Assembly: GCA_964188305.1 (NCBI GenBank)
Contig: OZ076886.1
Strand: one strand, 5' to 3'
Origin: Podarcis bocagei
Lineage: Eukaryota
Length of the DNA stretch: 64,000 nucleotides
Part shown: positions 3,751-64,000 of the stretch, one piece after another
How the letters are laid out: the number at the start of each line of letters is the position of its first letter
How positions within the stretch are numbered: position 1 is the first letter of the stretch
Program-made: the position numbers and the translations under genes
The notes under the pieces: generated by a model
The model's input: the letters and a program-made list of their open reading frames with translations, nothing else
What the model was told of the DNA's origin: nothing
Databases searched by the model: none

Positions 3751-3920
3751 CAGTGGCGTAGCGTGGGTTGTCAGCACCCGGGGCAAGGCAAGTAATTTGC
3801 GCCCCCTAACCCGTGGATTTGCGCCCCCTAACCCGTGGATTTGCACCCCCTAACCCTAACCCCCAGATGTTGCGCCCGGTGCGGCCGGCCCCCCCTGAAC
3901 CCCCCCACGCTACACCAGTG
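3751..3920 (+). mobile_element. Non-autonomous hAT MITE with CCCTAA-containing minisatellite, copy 1
   Basis: TIRs CAGTGGCGTAGCGTGG / CCACGCTACACCAGTG. Perfect 8-bp TSD GGCAGGGG (3743-3750, 3921-3928). Confidence 0.88.
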
Positions 3921-5104: not shown

Positions 5105-5469
5105 TGTTGTTGTTTAGTCATTTAGTCGTGTCCGACTCTTCATGACCCCATGGACCAGAGCACGCCAGGCACCTCTGTCCTCCACTGCCTCCCGCAGTTT
5201 GGTCAAACTCATGCTGGTAGCTTCGAAGACACTATCCAACCATCCCATCCTCTGTCGTCCCCTTCTCCTTGTGCCCTCCATCTTTCTCAACATCAGGGTT
5301 TTTTCCAGGGAGTCTTCTCTTCTCATGAGGTGGCCAAAGTATTGGAGCCTCAGCTTCACAATCTGTCCTTCCAGTGAGCACTCAGGGCTGATTTCCTTCA
5401 GAATGGATAGGTTTGATCTTCTTGCAGTCCATGGGACTCTCAAGAGTCTCCTCCAGCACCATAATTCAA
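5105..5469 (-). mobile_element. BovB (RTE clade) LINE 3' fragment
   Basis: Translation ELWCWRRLLRVPWTARRSN...LQYFGHLMRR...WRALVHGV is the diagnostic BovB C-terminus. (CAA)n tail. TSD TGGATGCT (5097-5104, 5470-5477). Confidence 0.95.
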
Positions 5470-6232
5470 TGGATGCTAACATCCCATAAAAGATGCTGGA
5501 TTAGATGAAGGTTCTTCTTGCATTTCTTATGGGTGGGTGAAAAGACGCTTCCAGGTGGCATCGATTAGGAGGTACAAAGTGTCCCTTTTTACCTCTGAAT
5601 CCCAGTTCAAAACATGCACATGCTGCAGATGAGTGCATCTGTTCAGTAGGATGATGTGGAGTAGCTTTAGTGAGGGCACATCAACTCGCTAACTGGAGAT
5701 GTGTTGAGAAACAACGGCATGGCAAAGTCAGCTCGCATTAGCTTCACCCTGCCATGAATGTGCAAAAAACTTCAGACCGCTCAGCTCCTGGTATAATTGT
5801 TTCGACAGCGAGAAATCCATACACCCAGAGTAACCCCCCGCCCCAAGCCAATATTTTAGTGCCATTGCAGTGGCTTTCAAACTGTGTTCCCAGGGATAAT
5901 GGGGTTCCTTGCCGGTTTAGATCGGCAGTGACAGGCAAGCTTCCCTGAAGCAGCTTTTCCACTGCGACCGATCTTCCTTTTGCAATGTGCAACATCAGGG
6001 GAGTGTCTGTCACTTTCTAGGCTGGAGAGCAGGGAGGGACCCAGGGTGAACTAAGAAGTTGCCTTTGAATGCATCCCAAGATTCTTTGCAAAATGCAGGG
6101 ATTCTCAGCATGGAAAAGATGTTTCCTGAGAGTAAGGAATCCGATGCCTACTTTGTTGTGAGATGGGTTCATTAAACATGACGTGATCTGCTAGGTACCA
6201 AAAAGACTCACAGCATAGTCCAATGATGCATA

Positions 6233-6474: not shown

Positions 6475-6695
6475 TATTTGTTTAAATATAGGCTAATTTA
6501 AATGGAGGTACGAAACTTTAGGACAGCTTCTGAAAAGTTAACTTGCTGCCAAAGATTTGTTTTGCTGCCCAGGCTGAAGTTTTTTGGGTGGGTTTTCATA
6601 CCCGTACTGTGGTTTTCAGCACATCCAGCGGTGCCCTGTGCCCACAATGGTGCTCCTTAACTTCTGGGGTGGCAAGAATAAAGACAGCAAGCAGG

Positions 6696-8231
6696 GTTTA
6701 AAACAATGTAAAGAATGGCAGAGAACCCTGGCGAAATACATCTGGCAGGGGAAAAGACCAAGGATTAAAATGAAAATATTGACTGACAAAAGGGAAAGAG
6801 GAGGTTTTGCCCTCCCAGACCTGAGCTTATACTATGAAGCAGCGTGCCTACTCTGGTTAAAAGACTGGATAAAATTGGAGAACAGAGACTTATTGGACCT
6901 GGAAGGTTTCAATAATTGGTACGGGTGGCATGCATATCTCTGGTATGAGAAAGTGAAAGTCCACAGGGCCTTTTTAAACCATATTTTTAGGGGACCAATA
7001 TATCAGGTCTGGGAGAGAAATAAGAACCTTCTCGAAAGAAAGACACCCTGGTGGATTTCACCAGTAGAGGTCTTAACAATAAAAAAAACCAATATGGAGG
7101 GGAAGAACGCCACTTATGAAGATTTGGTAAGAAAAACAGAACAAGGGCCCAAACTTAAACCTTATGAAGAAATAAAAGATCTATTCACTGGTTGGTTACA
7201 ATACCATCAGGTGAATGATCTGTTAAAAGAAGATAAAAGGAAAATGGGTTTTGATGACAAAAAGTCAGAATTTAACATAGAGATAGTAGAAGGTAAGAGT
7301 AAAACATTGTCTAAAATATATGACATACTATTGGAATGGCACACAAAAGATGAGGAAGTCAAAGAGGCAATGATTAAATGGGCAATTGACTTTGGCTATA
7401 ACATTGAGTTTGAAAAGTGGTTGGAATTGTGGAATAGAAATATCAAGTTCACGGCCTGTACGACTCTGAGAGAAAATGTCTGGAAGATGCTGTACAGATG
7501 GTATCTTACGCCGGCGAAATTGGCCAAAATGTATAGATTAAAGAACAAGACATGCTGGAAATGTGGTGAAGTGGAGGGAGACCTCTACCATATGTGGTGG
7601 CTATGCAACAAGGCGAAGGCTTTCTGGGAAGCAATATACAATGAGCTCAAAAAAATACTAAAATATACCTTTCCCAAAAGACCTGAGGCCTTCTTGCTGG
7701 GAATCATGGGCAAAGAAATAAAAAATGAAGATAAAAAAATATTTCTCTATGCCACCACAGCTGCAAGAATTATGCTGGCACAAAATTGTAAAATAGAAAC
7801 TATGCCTACTATAAGTGACTGGCAGGTCAAAATGATAAACTACGCCGAACTTGATAGATTAACAGGCAGAATACGAGACCAAGACGATCAGAAATTCCAG
7901 AAAAATTGGAGTAAATTTTGGAAATATATTGGAATGGATTTATAAGATGAACTGGCGGGGCTAGAGTAACTCTATCAGCGAATAACTATAAGTTTAAAAA
8001 TTAAATACGCAATCATGGAATTTATTTGATACTTACCAAAAGGGTGAAGGGAAGTCAAAGGCTCGGTTGAGCCTAAAATATTATGATTTTCTTTTTTATG
8101 ATTTTTATGTTTACTTTTTGTTTGTATAGTATGGGGAATGGGAATAATAATCTATGTAAATGTGTTTATTTTTGTATTTGTTTGTTCTTTACAAATTCTG
8201 AATAAAAATTTAATTTATTTTTTTTTTTAAA
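6696..8231 (+). mobile_element. 5'-truncated L1-clade LINE with an uninterrupted ORF2 C-terminal part (to 7945)
   Basis: RGGFALPDL motif, zinc knuckle CWKC-x8-H-x4-C (CWKCGEVEGDLYHMWWLC), AATAAA and A tail. Perfect 16-bp TSD AAAGACAGCAAGCAGG (6680-6695, 8232-8247). Confidence 0.93.
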
Positions 8232-10101: not shown

Positions 10102-10249
10102 CAGTGGCGTAGCGTGGGGGGTGCAGGGGGGGGCCGGCCGCACTGGGCGCAACATCTGGGGGTTAGGGTTAGGGGGCGCAAATCCACGGGTTAGGGGGCG
10201 CAAATTACTTGCCTTGCCCCGGGTGCTGACAACCCACGCTACGCCACTG
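10102..10249 (-). mobile_element. hAT MITE with CCCTAA minisatellite, copy 2
   Basis: Reverse complement of 3751-3920 lacking one 22-bp unit. Perfect TSD GATTGTTC (10094-10101, 10250-10257). Confidence 0.9.
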
Positions 10250-10496: not shown

Positions 10497-11294
10497 AAAG
10501 GTAAAGGGACCACTCAGCGGCGTAGCGTGAGTTGTCAGCACCCGGGGCAATGCAAGTAATTTGCGCCCCCTAACCCGGGGCAAGGCAAGTAATTTGCGCC
10601 CCCCCAACCCCTAACCTGCGAGTTGCCGCTGGCGCTGCCGCGCAAACAACACTGCTTGCCCGGAGGAGGATGGAGGCAGAAGCAGCCGCCGCCTGTGGCT
10701 GGGCCGAGGGGATGGCGGCGGCAGCAGGGTGAAGAGGCTGCCCGTGCCCGGCCAGGCGTCGGTGGCGGCGTCGGCGCTGCTGCAGCGGCTGCTCCTCCTG
10801 CGAGCAGTGAGCGGAGCGCAGCCACAGCGACGGCGGGGGGCGCGCGCGCAAGGGCGCAAGGCTGGCGGTGGCGGCGGGGAGCCCGGCGGAGGAAGGAACT
10901 TGTCCCTTCCCTCTGGACTCGCGCCCCCCCAGATGTTGCGCCCGGTGCGGTCGGCACCCCTGGGACCACTGACCATTAGGTCCAGTCGTGGCCAACTCTG
11001 GGGTTGTGGCGCTCATCTCGCTTTATTGGCCGAGGGAGCTGGCGTACACCTTCCGGGGCATGTGGCCAGCATGATTAAACTGCTTCTAGCGAACCAGAGC
11101 AGCACACGGAAACGCCATTTACCTTCCCGCCGGAGCGGTACCTATTTATCTACTTGCACTTTGACGTGCTTTCGAACTACTAGGTTGGCAGGAGCAGGGA
11201 CCGAGCAACAGGAGCTCACCCCATCACGGGGATTTGAACCGCCGACCTTCTGATCGGCAAGTCCTAGGCTCTGTGGTTTAACCCACAGCGCCAC
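10497..11294 (-). mobile_element. Sauria SINE interrupted by a hAT MITE at 10515-10962
   Basis: AAAGGTAAAGGGACCACT resumes as GACCATTAGGTCC at 10971. The remainder matches the other Sauria copies. Confidence 0.88.
10515..10962 (+). mobile_element. hAT MITE copy 3, with about 300 bp of GC-rich internal sequence and a deleted right TIR
   Basis: Left end CAGCGGCGTAGCGTG and subterminal blocks match copies 1 and 2. TSD GGACCACT (10507-10514, 10963-10970). Confidence 0.82.
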
Positions 11295-16329: not shown

Positions 16330-16484
16330 GGCTAGATAGCTCAGTCGGTTAGAGCGTGGTGCTGATAATGCCAAGGTTGCAGGTTCGATCCCCATATGGG
16401 ACAATTGCATATTCCTGCATTGCAGGGGATTGGACTAGATAATCCTCAGGGTCCCTTCCAACTTTACAATCCGATTGGTCTATG
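16330..16484 (+). mobile_element. tRNA-head, CR1-tail SINE (Squam3-like); degraded relatives near 113-220, 12205-12290 and 28770-28835
   Basis: TAGCTCAGTCGG A-box, GGTTCGATCCC B-box, CR1-type GGTCCCTTCCAAC tail. Confidence 0.75.
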
Positions 16485-33006: not shown

Positions 33007-33024
33007 GTAAGTTTCTCTTCTCGC

Positions 33025-33091
33025 GGGGGGGGGGGGGAGGGAGAGAGAGAGAGAGAGAGATAAGAGACGGAAAGAGAGAGAGAGAGAGAGA
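33025..33091. repeat. G-run followed by (GA)n
   Basis: Directly visible. Confidence 0.9.
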
Positions 33092-33260
33092 CCCTTGCCA
33101 CCTTCCGGAGGTCTCCCAACTTTTCTTCCCGCCAACTTTGCTTGGGGGCTGCGGCCCGGCCCCTGGGTTAGGGACCCTGGGTTAGGGAGCGGGGCTGCGT
33201 GGGAGGCGGGCAGGCGGGGGCGCGGAGTTTTGCCACGCTCCCTAAGCGTTCTGCTGAGAG

Positions 33261-33331
33261 TCATCAATTATGCAAGGGAACGGCGCGCTGCACTGGGGGG
33301 AAGGCAGGGGAGGCAGCGCACCAAGATGGCG
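33261..33331 (+). promoter_or_regulatory. POU-type site (minus GCATAATTGATGA, 33261-33273) and YY1 site (CAAGATGGCG, 33322-33331)
   Basis: Both motifs are visible. A POU6F1 and YY1 pair is known at the conserved SCN8A exon 1c of other vertebrates. Confidence 0.7.
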
Positions 33332-33413
33332 ACAACCGCAGTTTCTCCTGCAGCCTCCCCACCTCTGCAGTCCAGCAACGCCTTGCAGGAGTCGCGCTAG
33401 CGCCGAAGCCACA
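33300..33413 (+). other. SCN8A: SCN8A 5' exon, likely the exon 1c ortholog (TSS approximate)
   Basis: Contains the YY1 element and ends at the consensus donor ACA|GTAAGT (GT at 33414-33415). Confidence 0.72.
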
Positions 33414-36400
33414 GTAAGTTGCACCGCCAGCCCGGGGGGGCACTCCAGCGTGATCGCAGGGACAGGGGGGTGGGCGGTGGGGGGACGGGGACCCGCGGGA
33501 ATCCCACCCCCCAACAGATCTTCCTCCCCTTGGTTGGGATTTGAATTTTTTTTTAAAAAAAAAGCAAAAATAAAAAACCTGAACCTGCCTCTTCTCTCCC
33601 TCCCTCCTTCATTCCCCCCACCCCACCCCACCGCCCTCCACTTCCAGGCAGGGGCTTTGCCGCAGAGCGATTTCCCCGGAGCAGGGGCCGGCGCTTCTCT
33701 TCCAACCCCGCCTAAACAGACGCACACACTTTCCCACCTCCCCACTCTTGGGGGAAGAAGTGTGGGGAAGGGGGCTCATGGGCCCGAGCCTTGATGGCCC
33801 CAAGTCCAACAGTGGGAGATCGTTCTCTCTCTCCCCCCACCCCCCAGCCTTTTCAAGCAGTTCCCCAGATCGCGGGGGTGGGGGAATGCTTCCTAGTGCT
33901 ATTCCTTGCCCATCACCCCCTCCCCGCGCCGTATAGCAGGCTTTCCCCCGTTTTCTTGCCCCCACCCCGGATTTCAGAGCGGTGCTGCTCTTGCTCCCCA
34001 CTTGGGAAGCCCTCCAAAGAACGGGCTCCTCCTGGGTACTTGGAGGCTGGGTGGAGGGTCTGCTGCGCCCCCCTCGCCCTGCGCTCTCCTCTGCAGGGCT
34101 GCTGGCCAACTCCTACCTTTCCCCAGCCGAGGGAAGCCGATCCTTGCCTCCCCCCGCCTCCCCCATAGCCCAGCAGCAACCTCTCGAGCGTCTTTTTTTT
34201 TTTTCCTGCATTGGGAGAAGGAGCGCGGCGCCGACTTTCCGCTGCTGCAGGCAAGGCAAGGCAGGCCAGCAACTGGGGCGAGAGGCAGAGAGAGAGGTGA
34301 AGGTGGTGGCGGCGGTGGCGGTGAGGGGGCTGGTGGAACTGGTGCATTTTCTCTCTCCCCCCTCCCCCGTTCCAATCTCCTTTCCTATCCTTTAGCAGGC
34401 CACCTTTTTCTTGGCAAGGCTCCCTCATCCTTGAATCCGGGCCCTCTAGTCTGTATTGGCCTTCGCACGGGGCTCATTTCAGCCCCAGACTGAAAAACAA
34501 ATAACCCCAAAGCCCTCCCTCCCTCCCAAATCCTCCGCAAAACTCCGGGTCTAGAGCCTCCTTCACCCCTCCCCCCCCCCATGCTCCCAGTCTCGATCTC
34601 TTCCCCCCGATCTTTTTTTTCTTCGTCGTCCCAGGGAGGGAGGAGAGGAACAGAGAACGAGGCTGCCTCCCATTAGGGGACTAACTTAGAGCTGTCATTA
34701 TACACCCCCACACTTCTCTCCCTCCCCTCCCCCCCCCAACGCATTCCCAGTGGACGAAGTGAAAGGACGGCAAGTTTTATCCTGAGTTTGGAGGAGGAGG
34801 AGCAGGGGGTTGTCTTATTTGGAAATCTCCTTGGCTGGAGCCGGGGTGAGGGAGATGCTCTCTCTTCCCCCACCCCTACCCCCGCCCCGCCGCCTCGCTG
34901 TGCCTCTTGTGTCCACTCAGCCGATGTGGGGAGGACATAGGGGGCGTGGAGGACTCGAGGAAGTTGGAAAGGCCGGTGGGGGAGAGAGAGGATCCACGTT
35001 GCTGGAGATCAAAGGTACATCGGTTTTGTTTTATTGTGTTGCAAAGGGCTGGGCGGGGGGGGGGGTGCTGAGAAGGAGCGCAGGCGGCGCAGCCCTTCTG
35101 GATGGGGGCAGAGACTGCAGGAGTCAGAGATCGCCCGCCTGCCTTCCCCATCTACATCTGCTCAGCGTGTTGCAAGAGCCCAGGGTGATGGGTACGGATA
35201 CATCTGACTTTCTTAGGTGGGATAGGGAGGTGTGGGGCGCGGGGGTTGGGGGTGGACGGCCTGGAGATGTGGCCGCTTCGCGCTCTCGTCTCTTCCGCGC
35301 CGACTCCTAGGGAAGCGCTGCTTGCCTTCTTGTCACACTGCAGCGTTCTCCGCCGCCGTGCGAACTCATGACCCTGGCGTCCTGCGCTCCATCGGAGACA
35401 CCTTACCGGCTGTGGGGATGGGAGGCGGAGAGGGAGGAGTTACAGCGGCTTCCCCAAAAGACTTTCCTTTTGAATGGGGTTGTGGGTGGGGGGGGGGAGG
35501 TGATTAGCTTTCGCTCTCTGCTGTCGCCGGCGTCTCCCCGTCATTGGAGGGGGGGAATGCTTGTCTACTGTGTTTTACAGGGAAAGGGTTAAATCGAGGA
35601 GCGGTGGAAGAAAAGGAATGTTATTTAGGGTGTTTTATTTTTGAGATCTTCTCCCGGCCCCCATAAATTGATCACCTCCTTCGGTATCCGCTTTTGCTTG
35701 AGGTTTTTATTCCTCTCCCCCCACCCCCACCCGCTCTGTCTTTCTGCGGCGTTGGACTAAAGGGGAGAGCGGTTTAGGAACGTGGTGCTGAAACGGACAG
35801 CTCCCTGGACTCCGACGGGAAGGCGAAGAGATCTTCGTTACAAAGCGCGCAGATTTTTTACAGGACAGGTTTTCTTGCGGGGGGGTTATAGTTCGTTTTT
35901 TTTTTGTTTTTGTCTTTAATGGACTGTGTGTTTTCTCTGTGTCGCTTGGGCCTATCCATTAGGACCTCACGACAATCATCTAGGCTTTTGCTGGTGGTGG
36001 CGATGAGGGAAGAGAAGCAATTCCTCTTAAGGAAGCCAGGCTTTATTTATTTATTTATTTATTTAGTAACGTGGTTGAGTGCAGTTGCTTTTGAAAAGCA
36101 TCCTCAAAGCGACCCCAGTGTCTTTATCAAATGAAAGAATTTCAAGGCTGTTTGATTCTGGCGTGGAGGTAGCAAAAGGAAACACCCGCATGTCCATAGG
36201 AATCTCCCCCCCCCCCCTTTGTAAAAGACGGTTGCATGATTACATCACAGAAGAAACATAATGAAGCCCAGTAAGCCCAGTAGAGATGAAAGGTGAGGAC
36301 TTGAAAAACGGTTTCAAAAGCCACGGGCCCATTGGGTGCCCTGCTGGAGCAAGTACTGTAACTCTCTCTCTCTCTCTGCCTCAAGACTCCATCTGCAAAA

Positions 36401-61352: not shown

Positions 61353-61964
61353 TCATAGAATCATAGAATCATAGAGTTGGAATAGACCAGAAGGGCCATC
61401 GAGTCCAACCCCCTGCCAAGCAGGAAACACCATCAGAGCACTCCTGACATATGGTTGTCAAGCCTCTGCTTAAAGACCTCCAAAGTAGGAGACTCCACCA
61501 CACTCCTTGGCAGCAAATTCCACTGTCAAACAGCTCTTACTGTCAGGAAGTTCTTCCTAATGTTTAGGTGGAATCTTCTTTCTTGTAGTTTGGATCCATT
61601 GCTCCGTGTCCGCTTCTCTGGAGCAGCAGAAAACAACCTTTCTCCCTCCTCTATGTGACATCCTTTTATATATTTGAACATGGCTATCATATCACCCCTT
61701 AACCTCCTCTTCTCCAGGCTAAACATGCCCAGCTCCCTTAGCCGTTCCTCATAAGGCATCGTTTCCAGGCCTTTGACCATTTTGGTTGCCCTCCTCTGGA
61801 CACGTTCCAGTTTGTCAGTGTCCTTCTTGAACTGTGGTGCCCAGAACTGGACACAGTACTCCAGGTGAGGTCTGTCCAGAGCAGAATACAGTGGCACTAT
61901 TACTTCCCTTGATCTAGATGCTATACTCATATTGATGCAGCCCAGAATTGCATTGGCTTTTTTA
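61353..61964 (-). mobile_element. CR1 LINE 3' fragment
   Basis: [10 protein letters not shown]...[20 protein letters not shown]...[12 protein letters not shown]...[10 protein letters not shown], with an (ATTCTATG)n tail. Confidence 0.95.
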
Positions 61965-63708
61965 AACCATTGATTGACATACATTTGTGCCAAAATTATA
62001 GTGTTGGGGTTTTATTGTTCTAATGTTGTATTGACCATGTTCAAACATCATGGTAAGCCATAAACCATGGTTTACCGTGTATGAGTTGATCCCACCCTGA
62101 TTTTTGCTGCCTGCTAGCACTGGAAGGAATCAAACCAAGGTCTTTGACTTAGAGTTATTTTTGAAAGAGGGATTGTGGTTTGTTTCATTTTCAGCAAACC
62201 ATGATCTGAAGCCAAGGCTTGTTTTGGCTTACTGATTGTGCTTTGTTGGAGTGAAGCAAACCATGGTCATTGGTTTGAACATAACACTAAGCCAGTGATC
62301 ATGGTTTGTTTCCTCTGTGTACTAGCAGGGAGAAGCGAAACAACCCATGTAGGGGCATTCATAGTGAATCATTAACTGTGGTTTACAGTGATGGGCCACT
62401 GGTTTTGTGTGCTGAACTGTTGCATGCCAAGCTGAAGATGCCTACCTTAATATACTTTTAAAAGAGATGGGTTCATGTGTGAAGCTTTGGTTAAATCTGA
62501 CACAGTGGTGCTCAGTCTTTCTACTTTTAGGGAAGGGTTTCCAAATTGACTTATCTGCCAAGGATCACACAGGCATTTGCCATGGAACTCCTGTGCATTG
62601 TGGTGAATTCTGGGGCATGCTTGATTCATGTTGGACTCTGGTTAAGCTTGTTGGACCCATACAACTGGGACTACAACACAGAACATTGCTAATCCTACCC
62701 TGTAGCTAGACACTGTCCTGGAAGATCAGGGTAACTTGTCCATCATTAGGCATCTTCTTATTAAGGAATCTGCTCTTGCAAACTTTGCCATGTTTCTCTT
62801 CAGGCATTAGCGGTTCTTAGAGAAACACCAGTGAACTTTTGGCATCACAAAATGAAGCTGCTCAGAAGGAAAACAGTAATAGGTGGACCATAGGATTTAA
62901 AAGTTCTGGAGTGGTTGGCCAGTCTTAATATTAAAAAGCTGTCTCCAGAAGAGGTAGAGTTGTCAGGGTAGTACTAAGTATCATAAAATACAGTAAGTAG
63001 TAGAGAGTTCATCCATGTTATCTGCCATTTTACATGAGTTCTATAATGGACCAGTGAACTTGACAACCTTAAGTAGTTTAAGACAGGGATGGGGAACCTG
63101 TGGCCCTCAAGATGCTCTTAAACTACAGCTCTTATAATCTCTGAGCATTAACCATGATGGCTGGGGCTGATGGGAGTTGGAATCCCAGGACCGCACTAGG
63201 CCCCGCGCCGGTCCAAGCGGTTGCCTGGCCTTGTGTGACCTTCCTGGGGCCGCTCAGCCTCCCCTCGTGAGCAGGAGGCCAAAGACAGCAATGATAAGAG
63301 AGGGGAGGGAGGGGGAACAGCTGGGCGAGGAAGGGGTTAGCAGCACGGAGTGGGAGGGAGGGAGGTGCAGGATGGTGGCGGAGGTGCCCCAGTGGTGATG
63401 GTGGGGTGTCTGGGTTTTTGATCCCTGGAATATGGCACCCCTCAACAACATCCAGTGGGTACCATGTCGACTAGCTCTGGTTTAAGTGAGATACTTGGGG
63501 AATGTGTTGAGCTCATTGTCTCAGGCAGCTTTGTTTAATGCTCCCCTTGAGAGGGTGAATGGTAAAACCAATGCAACAATTGGTGGTATCTCAATGGAGA
63601 TGTGGCTCAACAAGCCTCATTCATTCTTCCCTCCAAAAATACTCAATTCACCCACCAGTATGTTGAGGATTTGACTTGTGACCGTCTGTCCTATTCTCTC
63701 CTCTACAG

Positions 63709-63762
63709 AGCTGACCTATCCCGGGCGCATCATAACTAAATAAGTTTCTGCAGGATGAAAAA
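63709..63762 (+). other. SCN8A: 5'UTR part (54 nt) of the SCN8A first coding exon
   Basis: Acceptor CTATTCTCTCCTCTACAG| (AG at 63707-63708) and the SCN-family TGCAGGATGAAAAAATG start context. Confidence 0.8.
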
Positions 63763-64000
63763 ATGGCAGGGCGGCTGCTTGCACCACCAGGCCCTGATAG
63801 TTTTCGACCTTTCACTCCGGAATCTCTGGCTAACATCGAGAAGCGCATCGCAGAAGATAAGAAGAAGAAGCGCCCCAAGCAAGACAGCAGTCACAGAGAT
63901 GACGACGAAGAGAGCAGACCAAGACCAAACAGTGACCTGGAGGCAGGGAAGAATTTGCCTTTCATCTATGGGGATATCCCAAAAGGCCTGGTTGCTGTGC
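63763..64000 (+). CDS. SCN8A: Voltage-gated sodium channel Nav1.6 alpha subunit, N-terminus (runs off the window; not in the ORF track)
   Basis: Translates [97 protein letters not shown] and GLVAV are characteristic of Nav1.6 among Nav paralogs. Confidence 0.95.

Follow-up and report, generated by a model that had tools for sequence, protein, structure and literature searches.

An upstream open reading frame on the YY1 site of the SCN8A non-coding first exon: conserved start, frame and stop from lizard to teleosts without amino-acid constraint

RESULTS

The SCN8A locus and its non-coding first exon

We analyzed a window of 64,000 nucleotides from Podarcis bocagei (contig OZ076886.1, one strand). 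Six-frame translation revealed the coding sequence of Nav1.6, which starts at position 63763 on the plus strand and runs past the end of the window at 64000. The first coding exon of SCN8A (63709 onward) is preceded by the acceptor ctctacAG, followed by AGCTGACC (junction 63708/63709), and its encoded N terminus was best matched by the SCN8A-type N terminus of Naja naja (94%), with birds at 87 to 91% and mammals at 82 to 84%. A non-coding first exon lies 30.3 kb upstream of this coding exon. The features of the locus are as follows.

33228 to 33413, plus strand: SCN8A non-coding first exon ("exon 1c" type) and immediate promoter, a deeply conserved block
33262 to 33277, plus strand: POU/octamer-like site TCATCAATTATGCAAG, containing the upstream ATG 33270 (7-species alignment, PMC3809569)
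33323 to 33331, plus strand: YY1/TISU-type core AAGATGGCG (single copy in the window, alignment, PMC2518114)
33326 to 33400, plus strand: 24-codon upstream open reading frame (uORF) MATTAVSPAASPPLQSSNALQESR with stop TAG (sequence, 7-species alignment)
33398 to 33400, plus strand: uORF stop codon, TAG in lizard and TAA in six fish (7-species alignment)
33414 to 33419, plus strand: exon 1c splice donor GTAAGT (junction in RNA contig X5; GT(A/G)(A/G)GT kept in fish)
63709 to 63762, plus strand: 5'-untranslated part of the first coding exon, with acceptor AG at 63707-63708 (sequence)
63763 to 64000, plus strand: Nav1.6 coding start, continuing beyond the window (translation and protein matches)

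A preliminary description of this DNA, made from its letters, had assigned the upstream exon to SCN8A, and this assignment is borne out by the coding exon at 63709 onward and by an RNA contig of a relative (X5, see below) that is spliced to the orthologous exon. Exon 1c of SCN8A and its promoter have been described by Drews et al. (2005, 2007), as summarized in a review (PMC3809569). According to this review, the exon is highly conserved, harbors Pou6f1/Brn5, YY1 and REST/NRSF sites to which its conservation is ascribed, and drives neuronal LacZ expression together with upstream sequence. The lizard exon harbors conserved predicted sites, identified by motif match, for two of these factors, namely the POU-like TCATCAATTATGCA and the YY1 core AAGATGGCG; no match to the RE1/REST consensus with up to three mismatches was found in the exon. 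The accessible literature on SCN8A exon 1c does not discuss a uORF.

Several further elements were observed around the exon and elsewhere in the window. The GC-rich region includes a second donor-like GTAAGT (CCGAA followed by GTAAGT) at 33007-33012, about 400 nt before the exon 1c donor, and this second site could serve a different alternative first exon, of the 1a or 1b type. Just upstream of the conserved block, at 33020-33092, a run of G precedes long (GA)n microsatellites. The scan for RE1 also returned three copies of TCAGCACCCGGGGCAA(G/T)GCA at 3771-3790, 10210-10229 and 10535-10554, which appear to belong to one interspersed repeat. The region at 10 to 11 kb of the window is GC- and CpG-rich. 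Finally, retroelement ORF fragments resembling the C-terminal part of reverse transcriptase, together with a weak tRNA-like match (29.9 bits) that is possibly a SINE head, were found at 6584-7945, 5114-5482, 61526-61993 and 16337-16395.

The uORF starts within a YY1/TISU-type motif

The ATG at 33326-33328 lies within AAGATGGCG (33323-33331), a motif that occurs once in the 64-kb window, and its context is ACCAAGATGG, with an A at -3 and a G at +4. It opens the frame MATTAVSPAASPPLQSSNALQESR, which comprises 24 codons and ends at a TAG at 33398-33400, leaving 13 bases (33401-33413) before the GTAAGT donor at 33414-33419. The preliminary description had reported an ATG inside a YY1 motif, a strong context and an ORF ending 13 nt before the donor, and all three were confirmed in the sequence. 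The length of the uORF is unremarkable per se, since shuffling the exon's own bases gave at least 24 open codons after an ATG in 61% of the shuffles.

The motif contains the TISU core AAGATGGC at 33323-33330, in sense orientation and with the ATG at its center; it is as the center of this YY1/TISU-type motif that the ATG 33326 exists. YY1 binds this core, and the YY1/TISU element acts both in transcription, via YY1, and in translation initiation (PMC2518114). Among TISU genes, 36% have an annotated ORF that begins downstream of the element (PMC2518114). The context AAGATGG, which the preliminary description had presented as optimal, belongs to the core AAGATGGC itself (PMC2518114), and for this reason its strength as a Kozak sequence cannot be counted as a separate line of evidence.

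The uORF is part of a spliced leader with three upstream AUGs

Many other organisms share about half of the words sampled from 33200-33413. We aligned runs of four relatives to the exon stretch: X5, which is on record as RNA, the genomic X2 and X18, and X1, which is RNA only by guess. The RNA contig X5 (256 nt) covers 33244-33405 and continues with CAACCTCA and AGTTGACCTATCCTGGGTGCAA. The former corresponds to the last eight bases of the exon with three differences, and the latter matches 63709-63730 (AGCTGACCTATCCCGGGCGCAT) with four differences. Since this RNA joins the donor at 33413 to the coding exon and reaches back to approximately 33242, the ATG 33326 lies in the mature leader, at least 82 nt downstream of the RNA end. 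As the preliminary description presumed, the ATG is thus transcribed, and in the relative X5 the RNA begins upstream rather than downstream of 33326. Contigs cannot define a transcription start site (TSS), and a second TSS closer to AUG 33326 may exist; the 5' reach of X1 (33117) was not taken as a bound for the TSS.

The spliced lizard leader contains three upstream AUGs, at 33270, 33326 and 63755. The ATG at 33270, overlooked in the preliminary description, lies inside the POU-like site in the context TCAATTATGC (A at -3), is out of frame with 33326 and is also included in the RNA of the relative. Its ORF of 49 codons spans the entire 24-codon uORF in the spliced lizard leader and is ended by a TGA at 63712-63714, 6 nt into the coding exon. 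Fish keep this ATG, but the ORF that it opens measures 1 to 31 codons, and it ends ahead of the YY1-site ATG in four of the five fish aligned for that check.

The third ATG, at 63755, precedes the main ATG by 8 nt in a different frame and overlaps the coding sequence. It sits in an invariant motif composed of CAGGATGA, four variable bases and ATGGC (63750-63766), and this motif is shared by the lizard, flycatcher, elephant shark, skate and eight teleost loci. The ATG 63755 appears to be a conserved uAUG that overlaps the main start of Nav1.6. In leaders of the ATF4 type, a terminated uORF is followed by a uAUG that overlaps the coding sequence. The human SCN8A 5' UTR is listed in a computational screen with 181 nt, 72% GC and two uORFs, one of them ATF4-like (PMC12303066, with columns read by text order), and this entry fits the layout of the lizard leader.

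Start, frame and stop are conserved from lizard to teleosts, with a variable stop among close relatives

In close relatives, the exon block is 96 to 99% identical to the lizard sequence. The genomic contigs X2 and X18 aligned without gaps over 33246-33425, with 5 to 8 differences, and their flanks could not be aligned. Inside the 75-nt ORF, the sole difference listed for X5, X2 and X18, which stem from three separate studies, was 33386 C>T. This change converts codon 21 from CAG to TAG and cuts the ORF to 20 codons in all three. Additionally, X1 (one contig, depth 5.1) carries a deletion of 2 nt at 33363, and its frame is shifted beyond codon 12-13. Close relatives thus include variable stops and, possibly, a frameshift.

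For the deep comparison, we used short N-terminal scn8a models from annotations to reach loci, taken with an upstream flank of 10 kb. The resulting 7-species alignment comprises the lizard, as the one tetrapod, and the teleosts Pungitius, Megalops, Scleropages, Siganus, Boreogadus and Salvelinus. For Ficedula, Callorhinchus, Amblyraja, Anguilla and Tachysurus, the flanks (10 kb; 5.2 kb for Tachysurus scn8ab) stop short of the block, and the alignment is thus without a bird, mammal or cartilaginous-fish copy. In the six teleosts, the exon 1c block was located 2.5 to 9.5 kb upstream of the scn8a coding exon, with 70 to 75% identity to the lizard over approximately 190 nt. Both the POU-like GTCATCAATTATG and the YY1 core ATGGCGACA were invariant in all seven species; the fish version of the YY1 site reads AATATGGCG, and the fish counterpart of the TISU core is AATATGGC.

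All seven species share the YY1-site ATG, the frame, a length of exactly 24 codons and a TAA or TAG at one and the same column, and 36 of the 75 uORF columns are invariant. These 75 columns were free of gap intervals, compared to five in the stretch of 58 columns from one ATG to the other, and length varies again directly after the uORF stop. In the stop triplet, the first two bases (T and A) do not vary, and the third is A or G; equally conserved triplets made up one of the 25 neighboring ones (codons 16-24) and none of the 10 after the stop. Across the seven species, the uORF stop lies 10 to 13 nt ahead of the exon junction. Frame and stop, whose variation in orthologs would speak against the proposal according to the preliminary description, are retained in the lizard and the six teleosts, and they vary among the close relatives, of which three runs carry a TAG at codon 21 and one contig lacks 2 nt.

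Three observations were made alongside. In Siganus canaliculatus, an annotated 89-aa gene without Pfam match (L006, 7346-7615, minus) lies on the strand opposite to the exon 1c block and is probably a spurious call on a conserved non-coding element. In Pungitius (L002, 1-4315), the upstream neighbors of scn8a are two Methyltransf_11-type genes and a pKID/bZIP gene, leaving about 5.7 kb for the entire scn8a promoter and first intron. A metagenome scan for the pattern of POU site, gap and YY1 site gave no match.

The uORF peptide does not show amino-acid constraint

The preliminary description had proposed that the uORF may be peptide-constrained. The codon pattern contradicts this. Indeed, pN/pS was 1.02 in the uORF frame (1.05 for codons 9-24), compared to 0.81 in frame +1 and 0.54 in frame +2, which makes the uORF frame the least coding-like of the three, whereas the first coding exon of the same species, used as a control, gave 0.25. 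Values of pS were 0.22 for the uORF, 0.25 for frame +1, 0.34 for frame +2 and 0.60 for the coding exon. In other words, the "silent" sites of the uORF are far more conserved than true silent sites, and in the uORF replacement and silent changes occur at equal frequency. The distribution by codon position shows the same: invariant columns at first, second and third positions numbered 15, 11 and 10 of 25 in the uORF versus 46, 48 and 11 of 78 in the coding exon, so that third positions in the uORF are conserved like first ones, without third-position relaxation.

Codons 9-12, 16-19 and 23-24 vary mainly by non-synonymous steps, and the lizard peptide is of low complexity and rich in A/S/P/T, whereas the fish peptides are rich in F/L. 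The MATTAVSP and L-Q residues that are shared are uninformative on the peptide because the underlying bases are invariant at all three codon positions. Moreover, the open state of the uORF frame is not special, since the other two frames are nearly stop-free as well (stop-free in six of the seven species each).

A Pfam scan of both uORF peptides gave no match, ORF-translation searches with the block in the uORF frame and in a minus frame found nothing, and an exact look-up of a 174-aa ORF returned no record. SCN8A did not appear in the accessible parts of the Sandmann 2023 tables, nor was it named in a human-brain Ribo-seq preprint and a nanoRibo-seq paper, an absence that is uninformative.

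DISCUSSION

We propose that 33326-33400 is a genuine uORF in the mature SCN8A leader and, probably, an ordinary one that works independently of its peptide. With its amino acids free to drift, it amounts at most to an upstream frame that dampens translation, placed on a YY1 DNA site, and a conserved small protein or micropeptide gene is contradicted by the codon pattern. Constraint on the promoter/leader block of about 190 bp is at the nucleotide level, from teleosts to lizard. With an AUG in good context, a frame that is always open and 24 codons long in the seven species, and a stop shortly ahead of the exon junction, the uORF would most likely act whatever its peptide sequence. Ribosomes starting at 33326, or earlier at 33270, would have to terminate and re-initiate, or else scan past, before arriving at the Nav1.6 AUG, 67 nt further on. 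The third, overlapping uAUG 8 nt before the main start would give the leader an ATF4-like layout. Judging from the sequence, YY1 may bind the motif, the uORF may be translated, and Nav1.6 dosage may be affected.

Less likely in our view, yet a serious rival, is an explanation purely at the DNA level, in which the block is a promoter or first-exon enhancer built of POU, YY1 and further motifs, and the ORF, its length and its stop are by-products. Third positions that are conserved like first ones, the "synonymous" divergence far below that of real coding sequence, three nearly stop-free frames and the ease with which 24 open codons follow an ATG in shuffled sequence all speak for it, as does the invariance of the ORF head ATGGCGACAACCGCAGTTTCTCC and of the CTGCAGT block at all three codon positions. 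The literature, too, credits transcription-factor sites, with exon 1c and its upstream sequence driving neuronal LacZ (PMC3809569). Against this explanation stand the stop triplet, which is a conserved island with hardly an equal among its neighbors and in which the exchange of TAA for TAG preserves the stop function, and the indels, which occur directly before the ATG and after the stop and not in between. Furthermore, some translation is hard to avoid because the AUG is present in spliced RNA with a good context.

The view of the preliminary description, in which the uORF peptide itself is under selection as a free micropeptide or as a stalling nascent chain, is very improbable. It can draw on the conserved start, frame and stop, on the MATTAVSP N terminus and the L-Q at positions 14-15 common to lizard and most fish, and on an F-L-D near the C terminus common to fish. 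Against it stand the pN/pS of 1.02 in the least coding-like of the three frames and the location of the shared residues on stretches invariant at three codon positions. Codons 9-12, 16-19 and 23-24 change mostly in a non-synonymous manner, the compositions of the lizard and fish peptides differ, and neither a family match nor a hit in the ORF-translation searches was obtained. Moreover, the C-terminal part is truncated in three runs and frameshifted in one low-depth contig.

Still less credible is a conserved structure of the leader RNA, such as a hairpin that presents or hides the AUG. The lizard leader folds stably, at -69.4 kcal/mol for 172 nt, and the AUG comes to lie close to the apex of an extended GC-rich hairpin, but its z-score against shuffles is only -1.17, and RNAalifold on the seven species gave -10 kcal/mol, the covariation term being +0.46. 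In fish, this hairpin does not persist, since the sequence of its 5' arm is part of what is deleted there, and we rejected this candidate on these grounds.

Some of the data also weigh against a role of the uORF that we favor. The AUG at 33270, with its A at -3, would capture some of the ribosomes first. Blocks with few indels are a common trait of deeply conserved non-coding elements, and for this reason the constant length of the uORF could be a by-product of the spacing between DNA motifs. Finally, the geometry is not fixed in close relatives, as seen from the TAG in X5, X2 and X18 and the deletion in X1.

Going one step further, the geometry of the uORF, i.e., an AUG on the YY1 site, 24 codons and a stop just before the junction, might itself have been selected for more than 400 million years, a reading that we put forward tentatively and consider somewhat doubtful. 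If it holds true, a single stretch of DNA would have two functions, that of a YY1 site and that of a translational gate on Nav1.6 dosage which does not depend on the peptide, and a TISU-like dual-use element would operate in a long neuronal leader instead of a short housekeeping one. Transcription and translation would then clearly be constrained by one and the same motif (YY1/TISU). In a weaker variant, limited to the first eight codons, the invariant N terminus MATTAVSP might matter as a nascent peptide. SCN8A is an epilepsy gene that is sensitive to dosage, and antisense therapies for it are being studied. A uORF retained in its leader between fish and reptiles would offer a natural handle on Nav1.6 protein output, for example via uAUG-blocking oligonucleotides or in the interpretation of 5' UTR variants. 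The locus also calls for caution in that a conserved ORF start, frame and stop within an ultraconserved non-coding block is not by itself the sign of a peptide.

Comparison with known systems

Like the mammalian SCN8A exon 1c, the lizard exon is a non-coding first exon that is spliced to a coding exon a long way downstream, is highly conserved, as far as fish, and carries predicted POU (Pou6f1/Brn5-type) and YY1 sites. The mammalian exon lies about 70 kb away (PMC3809569), compared to 30.3 kb in the lizard, and the lizard exon is without an RE1 match; its identity with 1c rests on the description in the review (PMC3809569).

Like the AMD1 MAGDIS uORF, the arginine attenuator peptide and micropeptide genes, the SCN8A uORF is a short ORF at a conserved position in a leader. 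Conserved-peptide uORFs such as MAGDIS and the arginine attenuator peptide are conserved at the amino-acid level, usually near the C terminus. In contrast, the SCN8A uORF has a pN/pS of about 1 and a C terminus that is variable, truncated in some relatives and possibly frameshifted in one.

The resemblance is closer to the peptide-independent uORFs of ATF4-type leaders, in which start and stop are conserved and the peptide is not. As in those leaders, a short terminated uORF in good context is followed by an out-of-frame uAUG, here 63755, that overlaps the main start. In SCN8A, the re-initiation distance is only 67 nt, and the likeness to ATF4 leaders is one of layout.

The YY1 site, for its part, has the same core AAGATGGC as TISU, with the ATG at its center, in one orientation and downstream of the TSS. 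The bases predicted to bind YY1 also provide the AUG context, and the role as an upstream ATG is the one found in 36% of TISU genes. However, TISU normally lies at +5 to +30 in very short leaders, whereas the SCN8A leader RNA of the relative starts at least 82 nt before the AUG. Furthermore, unlike in TISU genes, another AUG precedes that of the YY1 site, and TISU genes are mostly housekeeping genes while SCN8A is neuronal. The dual use of YY1/TISU bases is thus a known principle, and what differs here is its setting in a long leader and in a neuronal gene.
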